64,000 nucleotides of DNA from Hyalangium minutum. GTDB taxonomy: Bacteria > Myxococcota > Myxococcia > Myxococcales > Myxococcaceae. The stretch lies in contig NZ_JMCB01000006.1 of NCBI RefSeq assembly GCF_000737315.1, forward strand, positions 62,001 through 126,000. Direction: 5' to 3'. The translations under genes and the position numbers were made by a program. The notes beneath the pieces are model-generated. The model did not search any database, had not been told where the DNA came from, and saw only the letters and a program-made list of their open reading frames with translations. Shown here one piece after another: positions 2,403 through 43,309 of this stretch. How positions within the stretch are numbered: position 1 is the first letter of the stretch; each line of letters begins with the position of its first letter.

Positions 2403-2918
2403 TCAGCGGCGCAGCCGCTCCCACAGGGACTCGGCGAGCATGTACGCGAAGTCCGCGTCCCCGAAGCGCACCAGATCCCCGTCCTGGACGTAATACTCCT
2501 TGTGGGCATCCAGGAGGTGCCCGTTCAGCTGCGTACCATTCATCGAGCCCAGGTCCACGATGGTGCTGGTGTCCGTCTGCCCGTGCCAGCTCAGCCGCGC
2601 GTGCTCCTTGGAGACGGACGGATCGTTGATGACCAAATCGCAACTCGGCAGGCGCCCCACCGAGAGCGAGTCCACGCTGCGCAGCGGCGGCAGCGTGGCG
2701 ACAATCAGCTCGTCGAAGCGCAGCATCACCGCCAGCTGCATGGCCTCCAGGCTGGGGCCCGTGGCCGCCATGGTGCTCTGCGCCCCCATGCGCATCGCCA
2801 TCTGCTCCACCACCGGCCGCGGCGGCTTCTGCACCAGCACGAAGGGACCAATCTGATTGCAGAAGAACGCCTCGGTCAGCCGCGAGGCCAGCGACCGCAA
2901 TTCCCGGACATTGAGCAT
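2403..2918 (-). CDS. FHA domain protein
   Basis: FHA signature GR...S..H...DLGSMNGT (SVGRLPSCDLVINDPSVSKEHARL...DLGSMNGTQLNG). Confidence 0.9.
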   Translation of the reverse strand: MLNVRELRSLASRLTEAFFCNQIGPFVLVQKPPRPVVEQMAMRMGAQSTMAATGPSLEAMQLAVMLRFDELIVATLPPLRSVDSLSVGRLPSCDLVINDPSVSKEHARLSWHGQTDTSTIVDLGSMNGTQLNGHLLDAHKEYYVQDGDLVRFGDADFAYMLAESLWERLRR

Positions 2919-2945
2919 GGCGCGCGCAGTCTAGCGCGGCGAGGG

Positions 2946-3917
2946 ATGACCACCACTCCCAGAGGTGCTAAGCCCGCCTCCGCCATGTCCTCGCCCGTCC
3001 TGGAGCTGCAGGGGCTCACCAAGTCCTATGCCAAGCTCACCGCGCTCTCCGACGTGAACCTCTCCATCCGCCAGGGTGAAATCTTCGCCCTGCTGGGCCC
3101 CAATGGAGCAGGCAAGACGACACTCATCGGCTCCATCTGCGGCCTGGTGAAGAAGACCAGCGGCCGCATCCTCCTGTTCGGCAAGGATCTGGACCAGGAC
3201 CCCGTGGGCCCTCGCTATGACGTGGGCCTCGTCCCCCAGGAGATCAACTTCGACCCCTTCTTCTCCGTCGCCGAGTCCCTCCGCATCCAGCTCGGCTACT
3301 ACGGCCGCCCCCGCGACGACGCCCGCGTGGACGAGGTGCTCACCGCCCTCAACCTCCAGGCCAAGAAGAACTCCCTCACCCGTGCCCTCTCGGGCGGCAT
3401 GAAGCGCCGCCTCCTCATCGCCAAGGCCCTGGTGCACAAGCCGAAGCTCGTCTTCCTCGACGAGCCCACCGCCGGCGTGGACGTGGAGCTGCGCCGCGAC
3501 CTGTGGACCTACGTGCGCAAGCTGGCCTCCGAGGGCACCACCGTCATCCTCACCACGCACTACTTGGAGGAGGCCGAGGAGCTCGCCGACCGCGTGGGCG
3601 TCATCAACGAGGGGCGCCTGCTGCTGGTGGAGGACAAGGCCTCGGTGATGCGCCGCTTCGGCGAGCGCCGCCTCGTGGTCACCTTCGAGCAGCCCCTGGC
3701 CGAGCTGCCCGAGGCCACCCGCCGCTTCAACGCCACCCTCTCCGAGGACCGCCGCACCCTCGCCTATATCGAGCGCGAGGGCACGCCCCCCTCCGGAGAG
3801 CTGCTGCGCGCCCTCTACGCCCAGGGCCTGCCCATCTCCGATGTGGAGACGCGGCGCTCGCGCCTGGAGGACGTCCTCATCGAAATCCTGCGAGGCCGCC
3901 CCCAGAAGGCTGCCTGA
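2946..3917 (+). CDS. ABC transporter ATP-binding protein (YadG-like ABC-2 exporter); start 2946 or 2985
   Basis: [27 protein letters not shown]-loop TTHY. The track ORF from 2337 is over-extended across the FHA gene. Confidence 0.92.
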   Translation: MTTTPRGAKPASAMSSPVLELQGLTKSYAKLTALSDVNLSIRQGEIFALLGPNGAGKTTLIGSICGLVKKTSGRILLFGKDLDQDPVGPRYDVGLVPQEINFDPFFSVAESLRIQLGYYGRPRDDARVDEVLTALNLQAKKNSLTRALSGGMKRRLLIAKALVHKPKLVFLDEPTAGVDVELRRDLWTYVRKLASEGTTVILTTHYLEEAEELADRVGVINEGRLLLVEDKASVMRRFGERRLVVTFEQPLAELPEATRRFNATLSEDRRTLAYIEREGTPPSGELLRALYAQGLPISDVETRRSRLEDVLIEILRGRPQKAA

Positions 3918-12512: not shown

Positions 12513-14306
12513 TCACCGCTTCGAGAGGAACTGGCGCTCCCACTCCTCCAGCATCCTCGCCAGCTTCATGCGCTGCGCTCCTGTCGTCGCGGCGTCCGCC
12601 ATCTTCTGGATCTCCATCAGCCGGGCCATGGCAGGAGAGAAGACGGCTTGCTGGTCCTTCCGGCTCAACCGAATGGTTGCGTCCGCCAGCCGCTGCTGCA
12701 GCACGTCCGGATTGAGCTCGATGTTGGGCGTGGCAGGTGGGGCGGCCGGCTCGGGAGAGACCATGAGGGTGGGTGCCTCAGAGGCTTTGGCTGTCGAACT
12801 CTTCGACAGAGTTCCTGGCTGCTGCACACCGGAAGGAGGAGGCGAGGCTTGGACTCCGTTCGCCGTGTCCCGCCCAGGAACCTTCGCGGGCTCGGTCAGG
12901 GCAGCCTCCTTGCTCTGCGGCACAGCCCTCCCTCTGGGAAGAGCCGAAGGGCGCCTTTGCGCCAAGTGATCCTCCTTGGGAGGGGGCTGCACAGCCTGGG
13001 TGGCTATCACTGGCTCAACAGCCCTGGGCGCCTCCGCCTGCTGAGGAGGCGGGGGCGCCTGAACCGGCGGCGCAGGTTCCTTCTCGGCCCGGGCCACGGG
13101 GGGTGGCTCCGTGGGCAAAGCCCTTCGGCCAAACCCGCTCAATCCCACCACGCCTGAAGCAACTACCAGGGACGCGGCCCCCAAGCCCATGACCCACAGA
13201 CGCCTGGAGGGCTTGGAGGGCACAGGGGCCGTGGCCGGTCCACGCAAGGACGCGGTGGCTCCCGCGAGGGAAACGGGCGTCAGCAGGGTAACGGTGGGAG
13301 GGTACACAGGCTCTGCCGCAACCTGTGACCCCTTCCCTGCGCCCGTGTCCTGTCTCGAGAGAAACGCATCGAGTTCCCGCCGCACTTCCTCTGCAGACTG
13401 GAAGCGTTGCGAGGGGCGCTTGGCGAGCAGCCTCAACACAATGCGCTCCAGTTCCAGCGGAACCTCCGGCGCCAGCCTGGACGGCTTCGGGGGCTCTTCT
13501 TCCACCTGCGCGAAGAGCACCTTCATCTGCTCACCGATGAACGGGCGCCGGCCTGTGAGCAGCTGGAAGGCAATCACTCCCACGGCGTAGAGGTCCGCGG
13601 TGGGCTCCACCTTCTCACCCCGGATCTGCTCAGGCGACATGTACTCGGGAGTTCCCAGAATGTGGCCTGACATGGTCAGAGCGCTGACGGTCTGGGACTG
13701 CGTCACCTTCGCGATTCCGAAGTCGAGCAACTTCACGGAGTGCGCGCCCTCGGCCTCCTGCTTCAGGAACACATTGCCGGGCTTCAGATCGCGGTGAATG
13801 ACGCCCCCGCGGTGCGCCGCCCCCAGCGCCGCGAGCATCTCATCGAGGATCTTCGCCGCCTCAATGGCGCCGAGCCTCACTCGCTTTCGGAGATAGGCGT
13901 CCATCGACACTCCGTGGAGCAGCTCCATCACCACATATGGGCGGCCGTCGAAAAGCTGCCCAAAGCCAAAGATGTCGATCACTCCCCGGTGCTGGATGGC
14001 GTTGACCACTCGCGCCTCTACCAACAGCCGCTTGACCAGTTCCCCTGCTTCAGCCAGCTCCGCCTTCAGGACTTTGATGGCGACCTGCTTCCCAATGAGT
14101 GGCTGGACGGCCCGGTAGACGATCCCCATGCCGCCCGCGCCGATTCGTTCCTTGATGATGTACTCGCTGACCTGCGTCTCAAGGAGTGGATCCCCCCCTT
14201 GCTCTGGAGGAGACGAAGGCTCCAAGGCATGACCGTCCCATGGGCAGAACACCATGCCACTCGGCAGCTGCTTGCTGCAGGCTGGGCACTTCATGGCCTG
14301 CTCCAT
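12513..14306 (-). CDS. Membrane Ser/Thr protein kinase with N-terminal zinc ribbon
   Basis: CPAC...FCPWDG ribbon; GAGGMGIV, VAIK, HRDLKPGN, DFG, GTPEYMSPE; TM LWVMGLGAASLVVASGVVGL; Pro/Ala-rich tail. Start 14306 or 14294. Confidence 0.92.
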   Translation of the reverse strand: MEQAMKCPACSKQLPSGMVFCPWDGHALEPSSPPEQGGDPLLETQVSEYIIKERIGAGGMGIVYRAVQPLIGKQVAIKVLKAELAEAGELVKRLLVEARVVNAIQHRGVIDIFGFGQLFDGRPYVVMELLHGVSMDAYLRKRVRLGAIEAAKILDEMLAALGAAHRGGVIHRDLKPGNVFLKQEAEGAHSVKLLDFGIAKVTQSQTVSALTMSGHILGTPEYMSPEQIRGEKVEPTADLYAVGVIAFQLLTGRRPFIGEQMKVLFAQVEEEPPKPSRLAPEVPLELERIVLRLLAKRPSQRFQSAEEVRRELDAFLSRQDTGAGKGSQVAAEPVYPPTVTLLTPVSLAGATASLRGPATAPVPSKPSRRLWVMGLGAASLVVASGVVGLSGFGRRALPTEPPPVARAEKEPAPPVQAPPPPQQAEAPRAVEPVIATQAVQPPPKEDHLAQRRPSALPRGRAVPQSKEAALTEPAKVPGRDTANGVQASPPPSGVQQPGTLSKSSTAKASEAPTLMVSPEPAAPPATPNIELNPDVLQQRLADATIRLSRKDQQAVFSPAMARLMEIQKMADAATTGAQRMKLARMLEEWERQFLSKR

Positions 14307-14615
14307 GGCATTTCCCCCAGCGGGTCGCTTGAGTCTCCAGAGTGGTGCCTCCAGAAGAGACGACGAGAGCACAAGGTCAAGCGTGCCTCACTCCCACTTT
14401 CGTACCAGCGAGCCTCTGCGCGTCCAGGGTTTGGGTTTCAACGAGCCCCCTGCTGAGCAAGTGGGCTCTGGGAATGCACGCCCTGGGTAAAGGAAAGCAG
14501 GCGGCCCACCAGGGCCCCGGTAGGAGGCCTCCCCCCTGAGCAGGGCAGCAGACACGGTCCGCCTCCCGGCCTCTCCATCCTTACGGTGAGTGGGAGAAAC
14601 GGGAGGCAGAACGCC

Positions 14616-17536: not shown

Positions 17537-17833
17537 TCGTCTTCCTCGGGAAGCACTTCGGGGGATTGAGCCGGCCGCCTGGGACACCTGCAGCCGCGGC
17601 CGGCGCGCCTCTCCCTTGAGCAAGGCCCGGGCCAAACCCCAGGACAACGAAAAATCAGGGTTTACCCAGCAGAGAGGGGGAAACCCGGAGTGCTCAGACT
17701 CCAATATTCTGAGACAAATCTGTAAAAGAATGTGACAGTCCTGCGAACAAGTGCCCGGAGAGACACCGAAAGTGTGACTTGCGAGGCCCTGACTCAAAAC
17801 AGGACAGGAGCGTCCTGGATTGAGACACCCCGC

Positions 17834-20800
17834 TCAGCGGGCCCGGCCCACGAGCGCGAGGAGCTGGGCGCCATAGCGCTGCACCAGCTTGGGGCCCACG
17901 CCCGGGATGGACATGAGCGTCTCGTTGTCCGCGGGGCGCGTGGCGGCGAGAGCCCCCAGCACGCGATCCGTGAGGATGCGGAAGGCGGGGATGCGCCGCC
18001 GCTTGGCCTCGCCCAGGCGCCACGCCTTGAGCGCCTCGACCAGCGCGGGGGAAGGCATGGGCTCGAAGGCGCCCGGCCCGGAGCGCCCGCCCCGCCCACG
18101 CCGCACGCCTACGTCATCCTCGTCCCACTCGGTGGTGAGCTCGGAAGAAGGCTCGGAAGAGGGCTTCGGGGTGCGCTCCCACGCGGAGGCACGCCGTGGC
18201 TTCTCCGAGCGCTTCGTCGCCGCCTGGGTGCGGCGGACGCGGCGCTTCTTGGGAGCCTTGGCCTGAGGCGCGGGCGCTGCTGGGAGCATCACCACATCCG
18301 GCGCGAGCACACGGGTGCGCTGGCCATCGGGGGTGAGCGTCAGCCGCTGGAAGGTGATGCGCTGGCCGTCCTTCTCGAAGGCGTCCTCGCTCAGCCGGGC
18401 CAGCCCGGCGCGCACGAGCCCTCCCACGAGCCGCTCGAACTCCCGGCGCGGCAGGGACTCACCAAAGAGCTCGCGGTGCAGGCGGCCCGTGGCCTGTCCA
18501 TCCCGCTCGTGCAGCGCGTCCAGGATGCGCCCGAGCGACTGAAGCTCACCCTCACCGGGCTCGGCGAAGCGCAAGGTGACGCACGTCTCAGGGGCGCACA
18601 CGTCACACAGCCCACAGGCCCTGCCCGAGTCCTGCACATCACCGAAATGCTCCACCAGGTGCCGCATCCGGCAGCCCGAGGCCTCCGCGTACCGGCCCAT
18701 CTGCTCCAGGTGGAGCAGCTTGCGCTCACGCTGGGCCCCATAGGGGGTGGCCCAGCCAGGCCGTCCCCGGTGGACCTGCTCATCTGGCGTCATCACCAGG
18801 CCACCGTGGATCCACAGTTGCTCGACGGCCTTGTCGAAGACCTCGGGCTCCATGCGGACCCGGGCCTGGAGCGCCTCCTTGGGCTCCAGCTGCTCGCGAG
18901 CGGCGCGGTAGAGGCCTTCGAGGACGCGGGGCTCGGGGTAGTCGCGTTGGTGGAAGAACTCGTGGGTGCGACGATCCACATAGGAGTGGAGCAGCACGGC
19001 GCGGGACAGCTTGCCATCCCGCCCCGCGCGTCCCAGCTCCTGGTAGTAGCCCTCGAGGCTCGAGGGCAGCGCGGCATGGAGCACGGTGCGCACGTCCGCC
19101 TTGTCGATGCCCATGCCGAACGCGGTGGTGGCGACGATGACCTTCACGCGGCCCTCGAGGAACGCGGCCTGGACGCGGTCTCGCTCCGCGGGCTGCATGC
19201 CCGCGTGGTACACGGCGGTGGGAAAGTCCGAGCTCAGCACCTCCGCGAACTGCTCGGCGTGCTTGCGCGTGGAGGCGTAGACGATGGCCGGGCGCCGCTC
19301 CGGTTCGGAGAGCACGTCACGGATGGCCTCGCCGCGCTGGCTCGGGGTGAGCTCGCGCACCTCGAGGGCGATGTTGGTGCGGCGGAAGCCGTGGATGAAG
19401 GTGCGCGCCGCGCCACCTCGAACGCCCTTCAGCCCGAGCTGCTGGACGATGTCCTTCTGCACGTCCGGCGTCGCCGTGGCGGTGAGGGCCACCACGGGGG
19501 CGGGGCGCAGCAGGGGCAGCCGCGCGCCGAGCAACCGGTAGTCGGGGCGGAAGTCATGCCCCCACTGGGAGATGCAGTGAGCCTCGTCGATGGCGATGAG
19601 CGCGGGCGGGCGGCGGGCCAGCAGCTCCACGAAGCCGGGCACGCCGAGCCGCTCGGGCGCAATGAAGAGAAAGTCCAGGTGGCCCTCGAGGTAGTCCGCG
19701 CACACCTGCCGGGAGGTGGCCCTGTCCCGCCCCGAGTGGATGCGCTCCGCCGCGAACCCGAGCGACTGGAGCCGCGTCACCTGGTCCTCCATGAGCGCGA
19801 TGAGCGGGCTCACCACGAGCGTCGTCCCCGCGCGCGCCAGGCCCGGCAACTGGTAGCACAGCGACTTGCCCGCTCCGGTGGGCATCACCAGCAGCAGGTC
19901 CTCCCCCATCGTGGCGGCCCGGCAGACATCCTCTTGATAGGGCCGGAAGTCTTCGAAGCCGAACGCCTCCTTGAGAAGCTTGCGGAGCTCACCGGGCGGC
20001 GTAGGGGCCCGAGGCACACGGCGAGGCCGGCCCGTCGCCGCCGCGGGTGCCGCCTCTGAACGCGCCCGAGAGGGAGACGCGGCACTCCTCTCGGGAGCCT
20101 CTCGCGAAGGCACCTCACCGGGTGCCACGGAAGCGGGCCGGGGAACCGGGGGCGGCCTCGGCGGCGAGCCCATGGGCACCTTGCCCACCACCTCGATGAC
20201 ATAGGCCTCGATGCTGCGCAGGAAGTCGGCGAGGTCGCCGCGCCCGCGCTCGATGCGCTGGAGCCACGCCTCCCACTGCCCCGTCATCGCGGGCGACTTC
20301 ACATCCGGATGAACGACCTCGATGAGCCGGATGCCCTTCTCCGTCGCCTCCAGCGACTTGCCCCGGCGGTGCAGGTATTCGCGCTCCAGCAGCACCTCGA
20401 TGATGGCGGCGCGCGTGGCCGGAGTGCCCAGCCCGGTCTCCTTCATCGCATCCGCCAGCTCCTTCTCATCCAGCGCCTTGCCCGCCGTCTCCATCGCCGT
20501 GAGCAGCGAGGCGTCCGTGAGGCGCGGTGGCGGCCGCGTGCGCTTCTTCACCGCCTCCACGTCCTCCACCTTCTGCGGCTGCCCCTGCTTCAGCCCGGCA
20601 GGCAGATCCTGCGAGTCCTCCTCCTCCTTGCCCTCGCCCTCCTCCTTGTCCTTCGCGTCCTTGGCGGTGCGCTCCTTGGGAGGCTTCACCCCGCCCACGT
20701 CCAGCACCTTCCACCCCGCGCGCACCACCTGGGTGCCCGAGCTGTGGAACCGGTCCACCCGCGCCGCTCCACCGGCCGGCCCCTGCGAGCTCACCGCGGT

Positions 20801-22189
20801 GATGACGGTGGTGACGGACCAGAGGTGGTCCTCGTGCCAGGCCGACAGCAGCCGGCGGCACACCAGCTCGTAGATGCGCCGCTCGTCCTGAGACAGCTGC
20901 ACCCCGTCCGGCGAGGTGGGCGTGGGGACGATGGCGTGGTGGTCCGTCACCTTCGAGTCATCCACGAAGCGCCGTCCCAGGGGCCGCTCCCCCGTGCCGG
21001 CCGCCAGCAGCGGCTCGTAGGGCCTGCGGATGGCTCGCACCACGTCCGGCAGCGTGGCCGCCACCTCCGCCGACAGGTGCCGGCTCGAGGTGCGCGGGTA
21101 GCTCAGCAGCTTGTGCTTCTCGTACAGCGCCTGGGCCAGCTCCAGCGTCCGCTGCGCGCTGTATCCATAGAGCCGGTTCGCGTGCCGCTGCAGCTCCGTC
21201 AAGTCATACAGGAGCGGCGGCGCCATCTTCTTCGTCTCGGAGGTGAGCGATTCAATGGATGCGCGGCCCGTCTTCACCCGCGCCATCACCTCGCCCGCCT
21301 CCACGCCGTCCGCCGCCAGCCGCCGGGCCTCGCGCACGCCCTCGCCCAGCTTGGCGCCCGTCTTCGGATCCACGTCGCGGAACCACGTGCCCCGGTACCG
21401 AGTCTCGTGCGGCATCCCCGCCGCCTGCGGCGCGAAGGTGGCCACCACCTCCAGGTAGTCTTCGGGGACGAAGTGGCGGATGGCCAGCTCGCGCTCCACC
21501 ACCATGGCCAGCGTGGGCGTCTGCACCCGCCCCACCGACAGCATGTCCCCGCCCGCCAGCGTGTAGAGCCGCGACAGGTTCATCCCCACCAGCCAGTCCG
21601 CCCGGCTGCGTCCCTTGGCCGCGTCCGACAGCGCGTCGTACGCACTGCCGTCCTTCAACTGCCGGAAGCCCTCGCGGATGGCGCTCTCCGTCAGCGACGA
21701 CACCCACAGCCGCTTCACCGGCTTGCGGCACCCTGCCGCCTCATAGATGTAACGGAAGATGAGCTCGCCCTCGCGGCCCGCGTCCGTGGCGCACACCACC
21801 GCAGCCACCTCGGGCGCGTTCATCACCTCGCGCACCACGGAGAACTGGGAGCGCGTGCCGTCGGCCACCATCAGCGGCCACTCGCGCGGCAGCATGGGCA
21901 GCTGCTCGCGGCTCCAGCGCTTCCACTCGGGACGAATCTCGTGCGGCTGGGCCAGCCCCACCAGGTGGCCAATGGCCCACGTCACCACATAGCCATTGCC
22001 CCGGAACCAGCCCTCCCCGCGCTGCGAGGCACCCAGCGCCCGGGCAATGTCCCGCGCCACGGCCGGCTTCTCCGCCACCACGGCCAGCACGGACGCACCC
22101 CTCCTCGGAGTGGCCTCCCGGCCCCCCTCACGCCCCACCTCCTGGGTCCTCTCGCTGTCGAGCCCTGCGCCCATCGCATCCCACCTCAT
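17834..22189 (-). CDS. DNA topoisomerase III (type IA) - RecQ helicase - HRDC fusion protein
   Basis: One uninterrupted ORF. Topoisomerase (about 22090-20170): [35 protein letters not shown], catalytic SYPRT (Tyr codon 21098-21100), [16 protein letters not shown]. RecQ (about 19985-18300): [57 protein letters not shown], Zn site CRMRHL..CGLCDVC. HRDC: [21 protein letters not shown]...IPGVGPK. AGGAGG upstream of ATG 22189. Confidence 0.93.
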
Positions 22190-22569
22190 ACCAGCCCCTC
22201 CTACGTCAACCCTCCCCGCCCCGATGCGCTCGGGCTCCCTCGGCACATTCTTCCTTATTATGCGGGGCCGACATCGGGCCCTCCTCTCTCACCCCACCTG
22301 GGGAGGCAGCTTGCCCTGCCTCCGGGGAGACTACCCCTCACCTCCCGTGAAGTTCTCCTCCTCCGTGCTTGCGCCTCACCTCCTGGGAGGGGTGGCCTTG
22401 CCAGCCCGTGGCGTCCTCACGCAAGTGTTTGGCGTTGGCCCGGAAACCTCGCACGGGTGTTTTGTCCATCATGCACTTCGGCTGCTGCCAGGGGCTATCG
22501 AGTCCGGACAGCGGGGGGGAGCTCCGCAGAGAGGCAGTGCCCCAAGGCCCGTTCACCGGAGAGTCCAGC

Positions 22570-22953
22570 ATGCAGTCGCATTGGCAGCACCGTTCAAGTC
22601 GGAGGGACGTTGTTCCCGGGGGAGAGACCCGAACGGTCCTGCGGTGGGAGTTTGGTGCGAGCGCGCAGAAGCCCCTGCGCCTGAACCGCCCCTCCTCGGC
22701 GACCCGCTCCCTGGGCTCGGGCCTGGGCCCCTCGCCGTCCCACCTCGTCGCGCTGGCGCGGGCGAAGCGCCGGCAGCGGGAGGTGCTGGAGACGGCGGGA
22801 CTGACGGCCTCTCTGAACGAAACGGTGGAGGGGGAGACTCGCCTCGCCTCGCTGTGGCCGGCCCGGGAGCCCTTCTCAGGCTCCGTGCTGCGCCCCGGGG
22901 CCCGCCGGGTCTTCACCCTCCACCCGCCTTGTCCGCCAAGGCTGCGGAGCTGA
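22570..22953 (+). CDS. Hypothetical protein (127 aa)
   Basis: GGAGAG upstream of ATG 22570, strongly GC-rich third positions (CTG/GCG/CGC/TCG), followed by a GCCACC/GGTGGC hairpin. No family recognised. Confidence 0.5.
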   Translation: MQSHWQHRSSRRDVVPGGETRTVLRWEFGASAQKPLRLNRPSSATRSLGSGLGPSPSHLVALARAKRRQREVLETAGLTASLNETVEGETRLASLWPAREPFSGSVLRPGARRVFTLHPPCPPRLRS

Positions 22954-23129
22954 ACGCCACCGTCCGGGTGGCCCTTTGTGAAGTGGGAGGATGAGGGGGT
23001 GCCAAGGACCCCGTCATCCCTGGGCGTGGAGGGAAGGTCCCTGCTGCCGGGCAGGGCCCTTCAAGTGGGAGATTCTGAAGCGGGGCTGCTCACCGGGAGG
23101 GGGGAGCGGCCCTGAGTCTGGATCGGCGA

Positions 23130-23166
23130 GGGGGGTGCCTCGACAGAGGCATCCCCCTTGGCTTTT
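23130..23166 (+). terminator. Hairpin with U-rich tail between convergent genes
   Basis: GGGGGTGCCTC-GACA-GAGGCATCCCC followed by TTGGCTTTTT. Confidence 0.6.
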
Positions 23167-39418: not shown

Positions 39419-42400
39419 CTATTTCCCAGAAGGCGGTGTTGCGCAGACGCGCAGGCCCACCGTGAGATCCCGGAGCGAGGCATCGGAGGAGTCCCGATTG
39501 GCGGAGCGGGCGGTGTTGGGGCCGTAGTAGTAGCTGCCCCCGCGCGCGACCGGCTTGGTGGAGTCCCACCAGTTGCGCGTCCACTCCCACGCATTGCCCG
39601 CCATGTCCTCCACCCCGAAGGGGCTGGCGGACCGAGGGTAGGTGCCCACCTCGTCCGGGCCAAAGCCGCCGGAGCGCTGGCCGTAGGTGCTGTCGATGTT
39701 GGCGTCATCCACCTCGAGCTTGGGGCCGTGAGGGTATTCGCGCCCGTCCACGCCTCGGGCGGCGCGCTCCCACTCCAACTCCGTGCACAGCCGGGCCCCC
39801 GGCACCCCGCCCTGCGAGAGGGGCCGCCGGGCCAGCCAGGCGACATATGCCTCCGCGTCCGTGAGGTTGATGCCGGTGACAGGCATGCGCAGCCAGTCCT
39901 GCTCGGCCCGCTGGGTGCGTTCGGCGTAGCGCAGCTTCGCGCCCTCGCGGACCACGTACTCCGGGGAGCCCGGGCTGGGCTTCAGGTGCAGCACCCACGT
40001 CCCCTGCACCCGCTCCAGCTTCAGCTGGCCGACCGAGTCCTTCACTCCCGGCGTCCGGCGGATGCGCTCCTCTTCGGGCAGCTCCTCCAGGAAGGCCAGC
40101 CACTGCTGGTAGGTCGTCTCATGGCGGGCAATGAGGAAGCCCGCCGTGGAGCGCTCGTGGAGGGGCACTGTCTTCAAGAAGTCGCGCATGGCGTCCACGG
40201 AACTGCCAAAGCGCAGGGGCCCTGGAGGCACGTAGATGAAGTCCTGGGGGAGCGTCCCTTCCGGCAAGAGCGGCAGCTTGAGCAGCCGCTTCTCGCCCCG
40301 CGTGAGCTGCAAGGGCATGGAGGCAGGCACATGGCCCGGAGCGCGTGCCGTCAGCTGGTACAGGCCGGGTAGCACCGGCGTGCCCTTCCAGGTCCCGGAG
40401 GTGAACCGGACCGGTGTCCTGGGCTCCTCGTCGAGATCCGCGTCATCCGCCAGCGGCAGGAGCTCCACCTCGGCCCCGGGTGCCTCCACCTCCAGCGTGA
40501 CGAGCGCGGGAGCGGTCCACCGGCTCCACCGCTGCTCGTCCACGTCATAGAGGCGCAAGCGCTGCAGCAACGCGGGCAGCGTGGCCAGCTCTCCCTCCTG
40601 CTCGGCGAGGAGCGCGCGCTCGTAGAGGTAGTCCGCCAGCGCCTCCCTCACGATGCCCCGGTCAGGTGCCAGCACCAGCGCGCGCTCCAGCCCGTAGGCC
40701 ACGGCGTTGAAGTGCTGGCGGACCTGGGCACTGCGGCTCGCGGCGTGCGTCCACGCGGCTTCCCCTTCGGCCTTGAGGCCCGCCCCGTACCGCTGGAAGG
40801 CTTCCGCGCGCTCGACCACCAACGCCTCGCGCTCGCCGCGAGCCTGCTCCAGGCCCCGCGTGGACTCGGCCAGCAGCGTGCGAACCTGCTCCTCGAGCTG
40901 CATGCGCTCGCGAAGCCGGCCGCTGCCATACACGAGCCCCAGCAGCAGCAAGAAGCCCGCGGCCAGGGCGCGCCGGGCCCTGCGGCTGCGCACCACCGTG
41001 CGGCGGGACTCCTCCAGGAACTCCTGCTCCCGGCGCGTCAGCTCGCCCGGGTCCAGCACCGCCGTCTCGGCCAGCTGCCGGGAGCCCCAGAGCACGTCGC
41101 GCGTGTGCCCCAGCCGCTCCCACTGCGCGGCGGACGACTCCAGCCGGGCCTGCACCTCGCGGCGCTCGGCGGCCTCGGCCAGCCAGCGGGCCAGCGTCTT
41201 CCAGCCGGTGACGAGCGCCTCGTGCGCCACTTCATAGGAGGTGCCGTCCTCCGCCTCGCGGGCCACCAGCAGGCGCGCGCGCACCAGCGCCTCCAGCGCC
41301 GCGCGGTAACGAGGATCCGCGCCCACCAGCTCCCGGTCCGTCTTCCGGGCGCGCGTGCCGTCGGCGGTGATGAGGCGCAGCAGCACCCCACGCGCGGCCA
41401 CCCGCTGATCCGGGAGCAGGCTGTCCACGGCCGCATCCGCGTGCTTCGCCAGCGCGCCCGACACGCCGCCCAGCCCGTCCAACGCGGCCTGGGTGATCAC
41501 CTCGGCGGCCTTGTCGCGCGCCTCCCACAGCTCAGCGAGGGCGAACTGGAGCAGCGGCAGCCCGCCCTCGGTGGCGGCGGTGGCGGCCACCAGCGTGTCC
41601 ACCAGCGCCTCGGACTCGAAGCGCACGCCCTTCACGCGCGCCGGGCCGACGATGGCCTCGCGCATCTCCTCGGGCGTCAGCGCGCGCAGCAGGTAGAGCG
41701 CCCGCGGCAGCTCGGCACCGAGCCCCGGCACCGCCGTGAGCCGCGTGAGGAAGTCACTGCGGCCCGTGGCCAGCAGCCGTACGCCCGTCACGCCCTCGGC
41801 CAGCTCGCCCAGCGCGAGGCCCGCCTGCGCGGCCTCCTCGGGCACGGAGAGCGTCACCAACTCCTCGAGCTGATCCATATAAAGGATGAGCCCGTCCTTG
41901 GCGCCCAGCTTCGCGCGCAGCCGCCGTGCCAGCTGCGTCGGCTCCGTGTGGAGCAACTGGGCCAGGGGCTCCTCCTCCATCTCCAGCACGGGGGCGAGCG
42001 CCGCGGCGAGCGCGGCCACGGGGCGGCGGCCCGGCACCAGGCGCGCGCTCTTCCACTTCCGGCCGTCCTCCAGCACCCCCTCCGCGATGAGGGGGATGAC
42101 GCCGGCCAGACACAGCGAGGACTTGCCCACGCCCGAGTCGCCGGTGATGAGCAGGAAGGGCTCTCCCTTGAGGCGCTCGATGACCGCGCGCTGCTCGCGC
42201 CGGCGGCCGAAGAAGAGGGCGCGGTGCTCGGCCTCGAAGGCCTGCAGGCCGCGGAACGGGTTGCCCTCGGGGATGGCGCCAGCAGAGAGTTCGTCCCGGC
42301 CGACCTGCTCCAGCGCGTCGAGCATCGCCGCGGCCGAGGAGTAGCGCTCCGAGGGCTCCCGGCGCAGGCAGCGCTCGATGACGGCGGCGAGGTTCGGATC

Positions 42401-43243
42401 CACGCCGGTCGCGGCCTCGGCGAGGGGACGCGCGTCCCGGCTGCGGACCTCCTCGGACAGCTCGCGCCAGGGCACGTCGCGGAAGGGGCCCTTGCCCGAG
42501 ACCAGCTCGTAGAGCACGAGGCCCAGCGAGTACACGTCGCTGCGCGCCGTGAGGTCCTCGCCGGCCCACGCCTCCGGGGACATGTAATAGGGCGTGCCCA
42601 CCAGCGCGCCGCGAGGGAGCGAGGGGAGGAACACGCCGTCCAGCGAGCGGGCGCCGAAGCCCGGGCTGGCGTCCGGGTCGAGCTCGGCGGGCAGCTCGGG
42701 CGGAGTGGGCGGTCGGCTCGGGCTCTTGCCGGGCTCGGCGGCGGAGGAATCCAGCAGCTTGGCCAGACCGAAGTCGAGCAGCTTCACCTCGCCGCTCTCG
42801 GTGAGCACGGCGTTGCCGGGCTTGATGTCGCGGTGGAGTACGCCGCGGCGGTGGGCGGCGCTCAGTCCTCGCGCCAGGTCCTTGCCGATGGAGAGGGCCC
42901 GCTCCCCAGACACGGGCTTGGCGAGCCGGTCCAGGCTGACGCCGCGGATGAACTCGGAGATGAGGTACGGCTGCTCCTCGAGCTGCCCCACGCGGTAGAG
43001 GGTGACGACGTTGGGGTGCTGGATGCGGGCAGCGGCCCGGGCCTCCACGAGGAAGTGGGACAGGGCGTTGGGGCCGAGGGCGGGGATGAACTTCACCGCC
43101 ACGGGGCGCTCGAGCAGCGTGTCGTGGGCCAGATACACCCGCCCCGTCCGCCCACGGCCAATGAGCCGGATCAGACGGTACTCGTCGAACTCCTGGGGAG
43201 GAGTCCACGCATCCGGGGGCGGAGAGGAGGCGGGAGAGGCCAC
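39419..43243 (-). CDS. Ser/Thr kinase - STAND (nSTAND1-like) NTPase - TM - PEGA-like - FGE/SUMF1-fold protein
   Basis: Kinase VAVK, HRDIKPGN, DFG, GTPYYMSPE; NPFRGLQAF...FFGR; Walker A GDSGVGKSS; Walker B LYMDQLEEL; LPLLQFAL; HEAL; TM LAAGFLLLLGLVYG; FGE-fold ETTYQQW, P......DAEAY, WERAARG, SPFGVEDMAGNAWEW, RGGSY, GLRVC. Confidence 0.9.
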   Translation of the reverse strand: MASPASSPPPDAWTPPQEFDEYRLIRLIGRGRTGRVYLAHDTLLERPVAVKFIPALGPNALSHFLVEARAAARIQHPNVVTLYRVGQLEEQPYLISEFIRGVSLDRLAKPVSGERALSIGKDLARGLSAAHRRGVLHRDIKPGNAVLTESGEVKLLDFGLAKLLDSSAAEPGKSPSRPPTPPELPAELDPDASPGFGARSLDGVFLPSLPRGALVGTPYYMSPEAWAGEDLTARSDVYSLGLVLYELVSGKGPFRDVPWRELSEEVRSRDARPLAEAATGVDPNLAAVIERCLRREPSERYSSAAAMLDALEQVGRDELSAGAIPEGNPFRGLQAFEAEHRALFFGRRREQRAVIERLKGEPFLLITGDSGVGKSSLCLAGVIPLIAEGVLEDGRKWKSARLVPGRRPVAALAAALAPVLEMEEEPLAQLLHTEPTQLARRLRAKLGAKDGLILYMDQLEELVTLSVPEEAAQAGLALGELAEGVTGVRLLATGRSDFLTRLTAVPGLGAELPRALYLLRALTPEEMREAIVGPARVKGVRFESEALVDTLVAATAATEGGLPLLQFALAELWEARDKAAEVITQAALDGLGGVSGALAKHADAAVDSLLPDQRVAARGVLLRLITADGTRARKTDRELVGADPRYRAALEALVRARLLVAREAEDGTSYEVAHEALVTGWKTLARWLAEAAERREVQARLESSAAQWERLGHTRDVLWGSRQLAETAVLDPGELTRREQEFLEESRRTVVRSRRARRALAAGFLLLLGLVYGSGRLRERMQLEEQVRTLLAESTRGLEQARGEREALVVERAEAFQRYGAGLKAEGEAAWTHAASRSAQVRQHFNAVAYGLERALVLAPDRGIVREALADYLYERALLAEQEGELATLPALLQRLRLYDVDEQRWSRWTAPALVTLEVEAPGAEVELLPLADDADLDEEPRTPVRFTSGTWKGTPVLPGLYQLTARAPGHVPASMPLQLTRGEKRLLKLPLLPEGTLPQDFIYVPPGPLRFGSSVDAMRDFLKTVPLHERSTAGFLIARHETTYQQWLAFLEELPEEERIRRTPGVKDSVGQLKLERVQGTWVLHLKPSPGSPEYVVREGAKLRYAERTQRAEQDWLRMPVTGINLTDAEAYVAWLARRPLSQGGVPGARLCTELEWERAARGVDGREYPHGPKLEVDDANIDSTYGQRSGGFGPDEVGTYPRSASPFGVEDMAGNAWEWTRNWWDSTKPVARGGSYYYGPNTARSANRDSSDASLRDLTVGLRVCATPPSGK

Positions 43244-43309
43244 GGTGGGTGCCTACGTGCCCGGACCTCGGCGATCAAGCCGTCCCGGGAGTCCGTACAC
43301 GCGAGGGGG

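Follow-up and report, generated by a model that had tools for sequence, protein, structure and literature searches.

A natural gene fusion of topoisomerase III with a RecQ-family helicase in Hyalangium minutum, and the widespread bacterial family to which it belongs

The stretch of DNA analysed here, which we call the window, comprises 64,000 nucleotides of the genome of the myxobacterium Hyalangium minutum (contig NZ_JMCB01000006.1, positions 62,001 to 126,000). It carries, on the minus strand, a gene whose product joins a topoisomerase III (Topo III) module to a RecQ-family helicase module. An initial annotation, made from the letters of the window alone, had described this gene as one open reading frame (ORF) free of internal stops, and a single stop-free frame does run from position 22246 to the stop codon at 17834-17836. 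Read from the ATG at 22189 ('MRWDAMG'), the coding sequence (17834..22189) has 1451 codons plus the stop, specifies a product of 1451 amino acids and is supported by Pfam, NCBIfam and the GC content of third codon positions (GC3). The start proposed at 22189 therefore coincides with an ATG, but the assignment is ambiguous, since alignment with relatives presents ATG 22174 and GTG 22090 as further in-frame candidates. The segment ATGAGGTGGGAnnnGATGGGC (22169..22189, minus strand) is nucleotide-invariant in an alignment of four genera, and might be either the coding sequence for an N-terminus MRW(D/E)xMG or a Shine-Dalgarno-like GAGGTGG placed ahead of the second ATG. The choice of start codon has no effect on the recognition of the gene as a fusion.

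All features of the gene given below lie on the minus strand. The GC content of the window ranges from 0.62 to 0.73 (2-kb windows), and GC3 stays at 0.85-1.0 throughout the fusion frame, with dips only in the linker between the two modules. There the GC content of second codon positions rises, as would be expected of the Pro, Ala and Arg codons from which the linker is built. The Pfam domains follow one another in the order Toprim, Topoisom_bac, DEAD, Helicase_C, RecQ_Zn_bind and HRDC, and all of them exceed their gathering cut-offs. We consider it practically certain that this is a genuine fusion gene contained in a single ORF.

The topoisomerase half opens with a TOPRIM domain (21695..22081; residues 37-165; PF01751), which aligns to E. 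coli TopB and contains E40 in the sequence VAEKP and the acidic motif D135-A-G-R-E-G-E. The type IA topoisomerase core follows (20219..21640; residues 184-657; PF01131 Topoisom_bac, 356 bits), and GRVQTP is also present in this half. The catalytic tyrosine Y364, located in LLSYPRT and encoded by codon 21098..21100, aligns with the tyrosine of TYPR in E. coli TopB, Y328, which is known to be catalytic. Every type IA motif that had been listed for the gene is therefore in place, including the tyrosine codon, with Pfam and the topB models in agreement. Alignment to the structure of E. coli Topo III (1D6M) extends from residue 4 to approximately residue 630 with an E-value of 6e-85, and includes the catalytic tyrosine. 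The half differs from 1D6M in that the inter-module linker stands where the E. coli enzyme has a short basic tail, and in an additional insertion rich in Lys, Glu and Asp (residues ~503-527; 20609..20683). This insertion corresponds to a gap in the E. coli alignment, is variable within the family and is predicted to be disordered, with predicted local distance difference test (pLDDT) values below 50. Residues 569-585 (20435..20485) align to residues 502-519 of E. coli TopB with a single one-residue gap, and the segment is conserved across the fusion family. The E. coli segment is the decatenation loop of Topo III, whose role is known for that enzyme.

Among subfamily models of NCBIfam, the topoisomerase half passes both PRK07726/NF005829 (652.6 versus a cut-off of 597) and TIGR01056 (537.1 versus 515.75), and it belongs to the PRK07726-type TopB subfamily. 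Its TDAGREGE sequence has Gly in place of the second Asp of the classical DxD. We considered whether this might be a fusion-specific or an inactivating change, and rejected the idea because stand-alone TopB relatives share the motif. Comparison with these relatives thus identifies TDAGREGE as a trait of the subfamily and not a defect of the fusion. More generally, the form (T/C)D(A/S)GREGE is found throughout the PRK07726-like TopB subfamily, for example in the stand-alone proteins P0196, P0203, P0213, P0216, P0223 and P0227, with Gly at the position of the second Asp of the DxDxE triad. The topoisomerase half has no C-terminal zinc ribbons, as had been remarked, but this is not special to the fusion because E. 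coli TopB is without them too.

The two halves are separated by approximately 60 residues rich in Pro, Ala, Arg and Ser (residues ~671-732; 19994..20179), found at the place where the initial annotation had put a Pro/Ala/Arg-rich linker. This segment has no domain match and is predicted to be disordered (pLDDT 26-35). An AlphaFold2 (AF2) model of a 1200-residue construct spanning both modules showed good confidence within each domain and a predicted template modelling (pTM) score of 0.42, an output limited to pLDDT and pTM that cannot prove the absence of an interface between topoisomerase and helicase. Among the solved structures searched, none contains both halves. In the 56 fused proteins that we classified, the linker measures between -13 and 183 residues, the median being about 30, if one garbled outlier (P0124, 324 residues) is left out, and some members have a linker of only ~0-10 residues. 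The linker sequence is unconserved among fusions while the reading frame across it is kept, and the family alignment contains no conserved internal Met or start codon in this segment. In a fusion from a metagenome-assembled genome (MAG) of the Polyangiaceae (L019, at ~2700-3000), the linker carries tandem repeats, each about 10 amino acids long (AAPAVARGAA/ASPAVARGAA).

The helicase half contains RecA-like domain 1 (19457..19945; residues 749-911; PF00270 DEAD), with DEAH, the aromatic loop and the Walker A lysine K775 of GAGKS (19865-19867), followed by RecA-like domain 2 (19013..19330; residues 954-1059; PF00271 Helicase_C). Present among the helicase motifs are the Q motif FRPYQ, GAGKS, DEAH, the aromatic loop SQWGHDFR and motif VI. 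Further on are a RecQ Zn-binding subdomain (18596..18736; residues 1152-1198; PF16124, 36.4 bits versus 25) with four invariant cysteines (C1173, C1192, C1195 and C1198) and an HRDC domain (17849..18046; residues 1382-1447; PF00570, 65.4 bits versus 23.8), which AF2 models as a helical bundle. On the evidence of Pfam and of alignment to E. coli RecQ, the RecQ motifs, the four-Cys Zn site and the HRDC domain claimed for the gene are thus all confirmed. The half also passes the RecQ family model TIGR00614 (372.9 versus 219.8).

Alignment of this half to E. coli RecQ (1OYW) covers residues 14-344 with an E-value of 3e-83, and the Zn site (357-404) aligns as well, preceded by an insertion of ~78 residues. 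The inserted segment between RecA-like domain 2 and the Zn site (residues ~1072-1169, ~78-100 amino acids; 18683..18976) is a gap in E. coli RecQ. In the AF2 model it is helical with a small winged-helix-like unit, and it is typical of the RecQ clade to which the fusions belong. A winged helix of the RQC kind with a beta-hairpin is predicted at residues ~1213-1291 (18317..18553) from the AF2 model and Foldseek; Pfam RQC has no match in the fusion, and the winged helix is known from the AF2 model alone. A second linker, rich in Lys and Arg (residues ~1307-1377; 18059..18271), is family-variable and predicted to be disordered (pLDDT < 50). The AF2 model of the whole RecQ half (pLDDT 70.9) therefore comprises two RecA-like domains, the insertion, the Zn region, the winged helix, the disordered Lys/Arg stretch and the HRDC bundle. 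Its best Foldseek match is the DNA-bound RecQ catalytic core 4TMU, with a TM-score of 0.79 on the target.

A search of 5.8 billion proteins, with clusters formed at 90% identity, revealed more than 100 clusters that have all six Pfam domains in one chain. Fusions occur in every genus of the Myxococcaceae, with clusters from Hyalangium (80-81% identical), Stigmatella, Archangium, Cystobacter, Myxococcus, Corallococcus, Pyxidicoccus and Aggregicoccus; MAGs of Thermoanaerobaculia/Acidobacteria contribute clusters at approximately 60% identity. A library clustered at 50% identity added at least 45 representatives that span both halves, down to ~35-40% identity, including one from a Zetaproteobacteria MAG. 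Single-ORF loci were also found in Bryobacterales, Solibacteraceae, Terriglobia, the Polyangiaceae MAG, Oligoflexus and an unclassified proteobacterium. The proposal of a natural fusion, which would have been in difficulty if full-length homologues were lacking, is thus borne out by more than 100 clusters from independent assemblies in which the frame is kept across the linker. In alignments of 12 close and of 34 diverse members, the catalytic residues of the two modules show little or no variation; E40 and TDAGREGE of the TOPRIM domain are invariant in the fusion family, and Y364 is invariant in the 34 diverse fusions. As judged from these alignments, both sets of catalytic motifs are under selection.

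Neighbour-joining (NJ) trees were built from the RecQ cores and, separately, from the topoisomerase cores. They are rough and midpoint-rooted, and recover the same subgroups, namely Myxococcaceae, Thermoanaerobaculia, Bryobacterales/Solibacter, Oligoflexus and others. Because the two trees agree in this way, we conclude that the halves have been inherited together, and we regard the fusion as a vertically inherited chromosomal gene. The RecQ halves form a clade separate from classical bacterial RecQ. This clade includes stand-alone RecQs of Acidobacteriaceae that have no topoisomerase within 3 kb, and a stand-alone, HRDC-bearing RecQ of the fusion subtype (L022) that has the same insertion ahead of the Zn site and occurs in the Polyangiaceae MAG that also carries the HRDC-less fusion L019.

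Several related proteins depart from the common architecture. One protein (P0186, 1193 amino acids, encoded on one 4.5-kb metagenome contig) has intact topoisomerase motifs, no Walker A, ESAE in place of DEAH and retained Zn cysteines, and may be a natural helicase-dead variant. Two others (P0184, 713 amino acids; P0194, 724 amino acids) combine Topo III with a single C-terminal addition, a domain that resembles the winged helix of the fusion (33% identity over 67 residues, E-value 2e-4). Since they nest within the clade of fused topoisomerases in the NJ tree, they may have lost the helicase core secondarily. Two further proteins (P0200, 1400 amino acids; P0207, 1037 amino acids) carry a Ser/Thr kinase N-terminal to the same RecQ subtype, with or without nine Sel1 repeats, and have no Topo III. 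Their RecQ part is ~50% identical to the RecQ half of the fusion, with the Zn site and HRDC present, and they look like a kinase-RecQ fusion family.

RecQ and Topo III act jointly from bacteria to humans (BLM-TOP3A-RMI), and the coupling of unwinding to strand passage is poorly understood. In E. coli, the cooperation of RecQ with Topo III is functional and not physical (PMC3905885), and RecQ and TopB resolve converging forks and catenanes (PMC2647321). The fusion unites members of the same two enzyme families, and by analogy its chemistry would be expected to be alike, with ATP-driven unwinding feeding single-strand passage. It differs from the E. coli pair in being one polypeptide rather than two proteins, in the separate clade and the ~80-100-residue insertion of its RecQ half, and in having TDAGREGE in place of DxD in its topoisomerase half. 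Eukaryotic coupling needs the N-terminus of Sgs1/BLM together with Rmi1. In the Sgs1-Top3-Rmi1 and BLM-TOP3A-RMI1/2 complexes, as in the fusion, a RecQ-family helicase is physically coupled to Topo III, but the coupling in the fusion is covalent, natural and encoded family-wide in one ORF, the topoisomerase is N-terminal and a long interaction region at the N-terminus is lacking. No Rmi1-like OB-fold was present among the neighbouring genes scanned. In 2001, Bennett and Wang reportedly engineered fusions of yeast Top3 to Sgs1, from which it appeared that a tether can take over from the domain through which the two proteins naturally interact, and to our knowledge these constructs are the nearest experimental precedent. 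Their paper (PNAS 98:11108) is among the references of PMC3905885.

Reverse gyrase is also a natural single chain composed of a superfamily 2 (SF2) ATPase and a type IA topoisomerase. However, its helicase-like domain is N-terminal, whereas the fusion has the topoisomerase at the N-terminus. Moreover, reverse gyrase is confined to thermophiles (PMC2647321), whereas the fusion resides in myxobacteria and Acidobacteriota. The M. xanthus DK1622 protein ABF90073.1/Q1DEW9 is an orthologue that is ~70% identical and shares both synteny and architecture with the window gene, although its linker is longer at ~180 residues.

The combined architecture has already entered the databases under several names. 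The DK1622 protein ABF90073.1 is labelled 'DNA topoisomerase III/ATP-dependent DNA helicase, RecQ family'; its counterpart in S. aurantiaca DW4/3-1 goes by the name 'topoisomerase B'. Current labels are 'DNA topoisomerase 3' in RefSeq, 'ATP-dependent DNA helicase RecQ' in UniProt and 'DpdF' in PADLOC; a combined name would be more accurate. No paper describing a naturally fused Topo III and RecQ came up in our full-text literature searches. Such a fusion goes unmentioned in a phylogenomic review of topoisomerases (PMC2647321), and hyperthermophiles are said to have 'uniquely' fused helicase and type IA units as reverse gyrase (PNAS 2020, PMC7245102). The fusion would contradict this common claim that reverse gyrase is the only natural fusion of a helicase with a type IA enzyme (PMC7245102). 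The novelty first attributed to the gene holds insofar as the literature contains no study that we could find, but it is narrower than had been implied, given that the fusion is annotated in GenBank, spanned by a PADLOC model and widespread. The window gene is thus an ordinary member of an annotated and widespread family that nevertheless appears not to have been studied.

RecQ is a 3'->5' helicase, and type IA enzymes require single-stranded DNA. The reading best supported at the level of sequence, and the one we believe is probably correct, is that the fusion serves as a single-chain decatenase/dissolvase in which RecQ and Topo III are coupled, as the initial annotation had proposed. The RecQ module would bind forked, gapped or junction DNA through its winged helix and HRDC domain, and would translocate 3'->5' at the expense of ATP to yield single-stranded DNA for the type IA half. 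The tethered Topo III would then cut one strand through Y364 and pass another strand via its gate. Its jobs would probably include the unlinking of converging replication forks, precatenanes and hemicatenanes, and the non-crossover dissolution of double Holliday junctions. Being covalent, the tether would ensure 1:1 stoichiometry and a high local concentration, and would stand in for coupling mediated by SSB or Rmi1.

Several observations weigh against this proposal. HRDC is missing from some fusion members, and these together with the degenerate helicase of P0186 imply that a coupling to ATP-driven unwinding is not obligatory everywhere in the family. The fusion does not reach the RecQ equivalog model TIGR01389 (461 versus 640.2), and its RecQ half, as judged from model scores and trees, is a member of the RecQ family but not an orthodox RecQ orthologue. 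Because it belongs to a distinct clade, carries an extra insertion and scores below the equivalog cut-off, its substrate preference may differ from that of E. coli RecQ. A mitomycin C proteomics study of M. xanthus does not list the fusion in the supplementary table that we searched, and thus there is no sign of induction by damage. Finally, because M. xanthus apparently retains recQ as a gene of its own, the role of the fusion may be narrower than that of a generic RecQ-TopB pair.

The retention of a separate recQ alongside the fusion, a matter already raised by the initial annotation, receives support for M. xanthus from a proteomics table combined with the order of UniProt accessions. The table lists the M. 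xanthus recQ as MXAN_1950 (Q1DAY5), and its entries Q1DE73 (MXAN_0787) and Q1DCX6 (MXAN_1238) define an accession order that puts Q1DEW9, the fusion, near MXAN_053x. This placement is consistent with the location of the fusion at ~0.61 Mb in another M. xanthus genome. We therefore conclude that M. xanthus very probably has both genes. When the Myxococcales RecQ L047 served as query for classical recQ, no named protein of the Myxococcaceae was among the matches.

A simpler explanation would be that the fusion achieves co-expression only. The linker would be passive or would be cleaved after translation, TopB and RecQ would act independently, and equal dosage would be the sole gain. We judge this to be unlikely, even though the linker is disordered, unconserved and very variable in length, and the same RecQ subtype occurs as a stand-alone protein in Acidobacteriaceae and in the fusion-bearing Polyangiaceae MAG, and elsewhere is joined to a Ser/Thr kinase. 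In several phyla, fusions that have diverged to ~35-40% identity still keep the frame intact without exception, the near-zero linker of several members forces proximity, and the linker is without a conserved internal Met or start.

An alternative of a different kind is that the two halves form an integrated, ATP-driven type IA topoisomerase that has acquired a new topological activity, such as directional supercoiling or ATP-gated relaxation. Reverse gyrase demonstrates that an SF2 ATPase combined with a type IA core can yield a new activity (PMC7245102; PMC2647321), and members with a linker of ~0-10 residues could pack their modules tightly. However, the domain order is the reverse of that of reverse gyrase, as had been pointed out at the outset, and the reverse gyrase model TIGR01054 reaches only 97.5 versus 471.7. 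The helicase has the full set of RecQ elements, namely the aromatic loop, Zn site, winged helix and HRDC, and is not a reduced helicase-like domain. In the window protein the linker is disordered, and with the low pTM given above AF2 defines no geometry between the modules. The closest named homologues are from myxobacteria. Myxobacteria and Acidobacteriota are mesophilic soil organisms. Because the order is reversed, the RecQ is full and the linker is disordered, a machine resembling reverse gyrase becomes less likely, and we consider such an activity, which the initial annotation had offered as its second option, to be quite improbable for the window gene. For part of the family, the near-linkerless members keep an integrated machine as a possibility.

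We also weighed the proposal that the fusion is an integrated machine whose action could not be reproduced by a mixture of RecQ and Topo III, that Myxococcota and Acidobacteriota use it as their principal dissolvase/decatenase, and that it offers a minimal, structurally tractable model of BLM-TOP3A. Such a machine would, for example, dissolve double Holliday junctions or hemicatenanes processively with no need of SSB or Rmi1, or carry out ATP-gated directional strand passage. This combined proposal is doubtful, but its chance of being correct is appreciable.

Far less credible is a role of the fusion as part of an anti-phage system or mobile element, such as DpdF of the 7-deazaguanine Dpd system or a TopB of plasmids or integrative and conjugative elements. 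This reading draws on the PADLOC model PDLC02865 'DpdF', which matches residues 15-1336 with 2657 bits, and on a neighbouring kinase gene (12513-14372) that matches PD-T4-6 kinase models. However, the NCBIfam DpdF equivalog NF041063 scores 205.3 versus a cut-off of 550, and the length and span of PDLC02865 are those of the Topo III-RecQ fusion family, while other PADLOC 'DpdF' sub-models (610-611 positions) match the RecQ core only. The 10 neighbouring genes include no DpdA/B/C or other defence components, the chromosomal synteny is shared by four genera, and the window has no integrase, transposase or defence gene near the fusion. We therefore reject the Dpd/defence reading, given that the equivalog lies far below its cut-off and no other Dpd gene is near. 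Evidently, the PADLOC DpdF model set took in housekeeping RecQ-like clusters. Since PDLC02865, PDLC02864 and PDLC02861 match the fusion end to end or plain RecQ cores, pipelines that rely on single PADLOC hits would mislabel such genes as defence genes.

The chance that the fusion is an assembly or sequencing artefact, with adjacent topB and recQ genes merged by a missed stop or frameshift, is negligible, because one ORF is kept in more than 100 independent assemblies, complete genomes included, and the three loci with halves in different frames (L004, L008 and L035) all come from nanopore-derived Microflora Danica MAGs, a project in which a further locus (L013) has a broken recQ ORF. We considered these three split genes as natural fission intermediates and rejected them as unreliable, since they derive from one nanopore MAG project; their split forms are probably indel errors.

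A natural, widely conserved single-chain version would amount to independent 'Rosetta stone' evidence that the partnership of RecQ with Topo III is ancient and has been selected for in bacteria. Biochemical, single-molecule and cryo-electron microscopy studies would also gain a 1:1 construct that needs no partner, and the linker-length variants and the helicase-dead and helicase-deleted members would serve as ready-made natural controls.

With regard to its surroundings, the fusion gene is preceded by genes for an aminotransferase, a transporter resembling those of the major facilitator superfamily (MFS) and an epimerase, and is followed by genes for an M10-type metallopeptidase, a subtilase, a Ser/Thr kinase and an amylase. 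The order aminotransferase-MFS-epimerase-fusion is common to the window, Myxococcus xanthus, Stigmatella aurantiaca and Hyalangium rubrum, while one acidobacterial fusion locus has a different gene context. Directly past the fusion stop codon is a terminator-like hairpin with a T-run (17800..17817, minus strand). Between the epimerase gene and the upstream region of the fusion, a GC-rich hairpin of 15 bp that is flanked on either side by T/A runs (23127-23160) is likely to be a bidirectional terminator. Given the terminator-like hairpins at both sides, we infer that the fusion is its own transcription unit.

The intergenic stretch ahead of the fusion is ~900 nucleotides long. It includes a conserved element, GATGTCGGCC-N-(C)ATAAGGAAG (22250..22275, minus strand), located ~60-90 nucleotides ahead of the start. 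Both this element and ATGAGGTGGGAnnnGATGGGC are conserved at the nucleotide level among the window, Hyalangium, Stigmatella and Myxococcus. The upstream element is a possible promoter or operator, and the upstream region of the fusion contains no match to the sigma-70 consensus.

Other genes of the window merit brief mention. A small ORF on the plus strand (~22573-22926), divergent from the fusion, has weak similarity (36% identity, E-value 3e-8) to a hypothetical protein of 130 amino acids at the same position in S. aurantiaca. The kinase gene at 12513-14372 (minus strand) encodes a 619-residue Ser/Thr kinase that matches many PADLOC PD-T4-6 kinase models with up to 305 bits, a result that probably reflects generic kinase similarity in a kinase-rich myxobacterial genome. 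Further along, the gene at 39419-43252 (minus strand) encodes a 1277-residue protein in which a Ser/Thr kinase and an nSTAND1 NTPase are joined to an FGE-sulfatase-like domain at the C-terminus.

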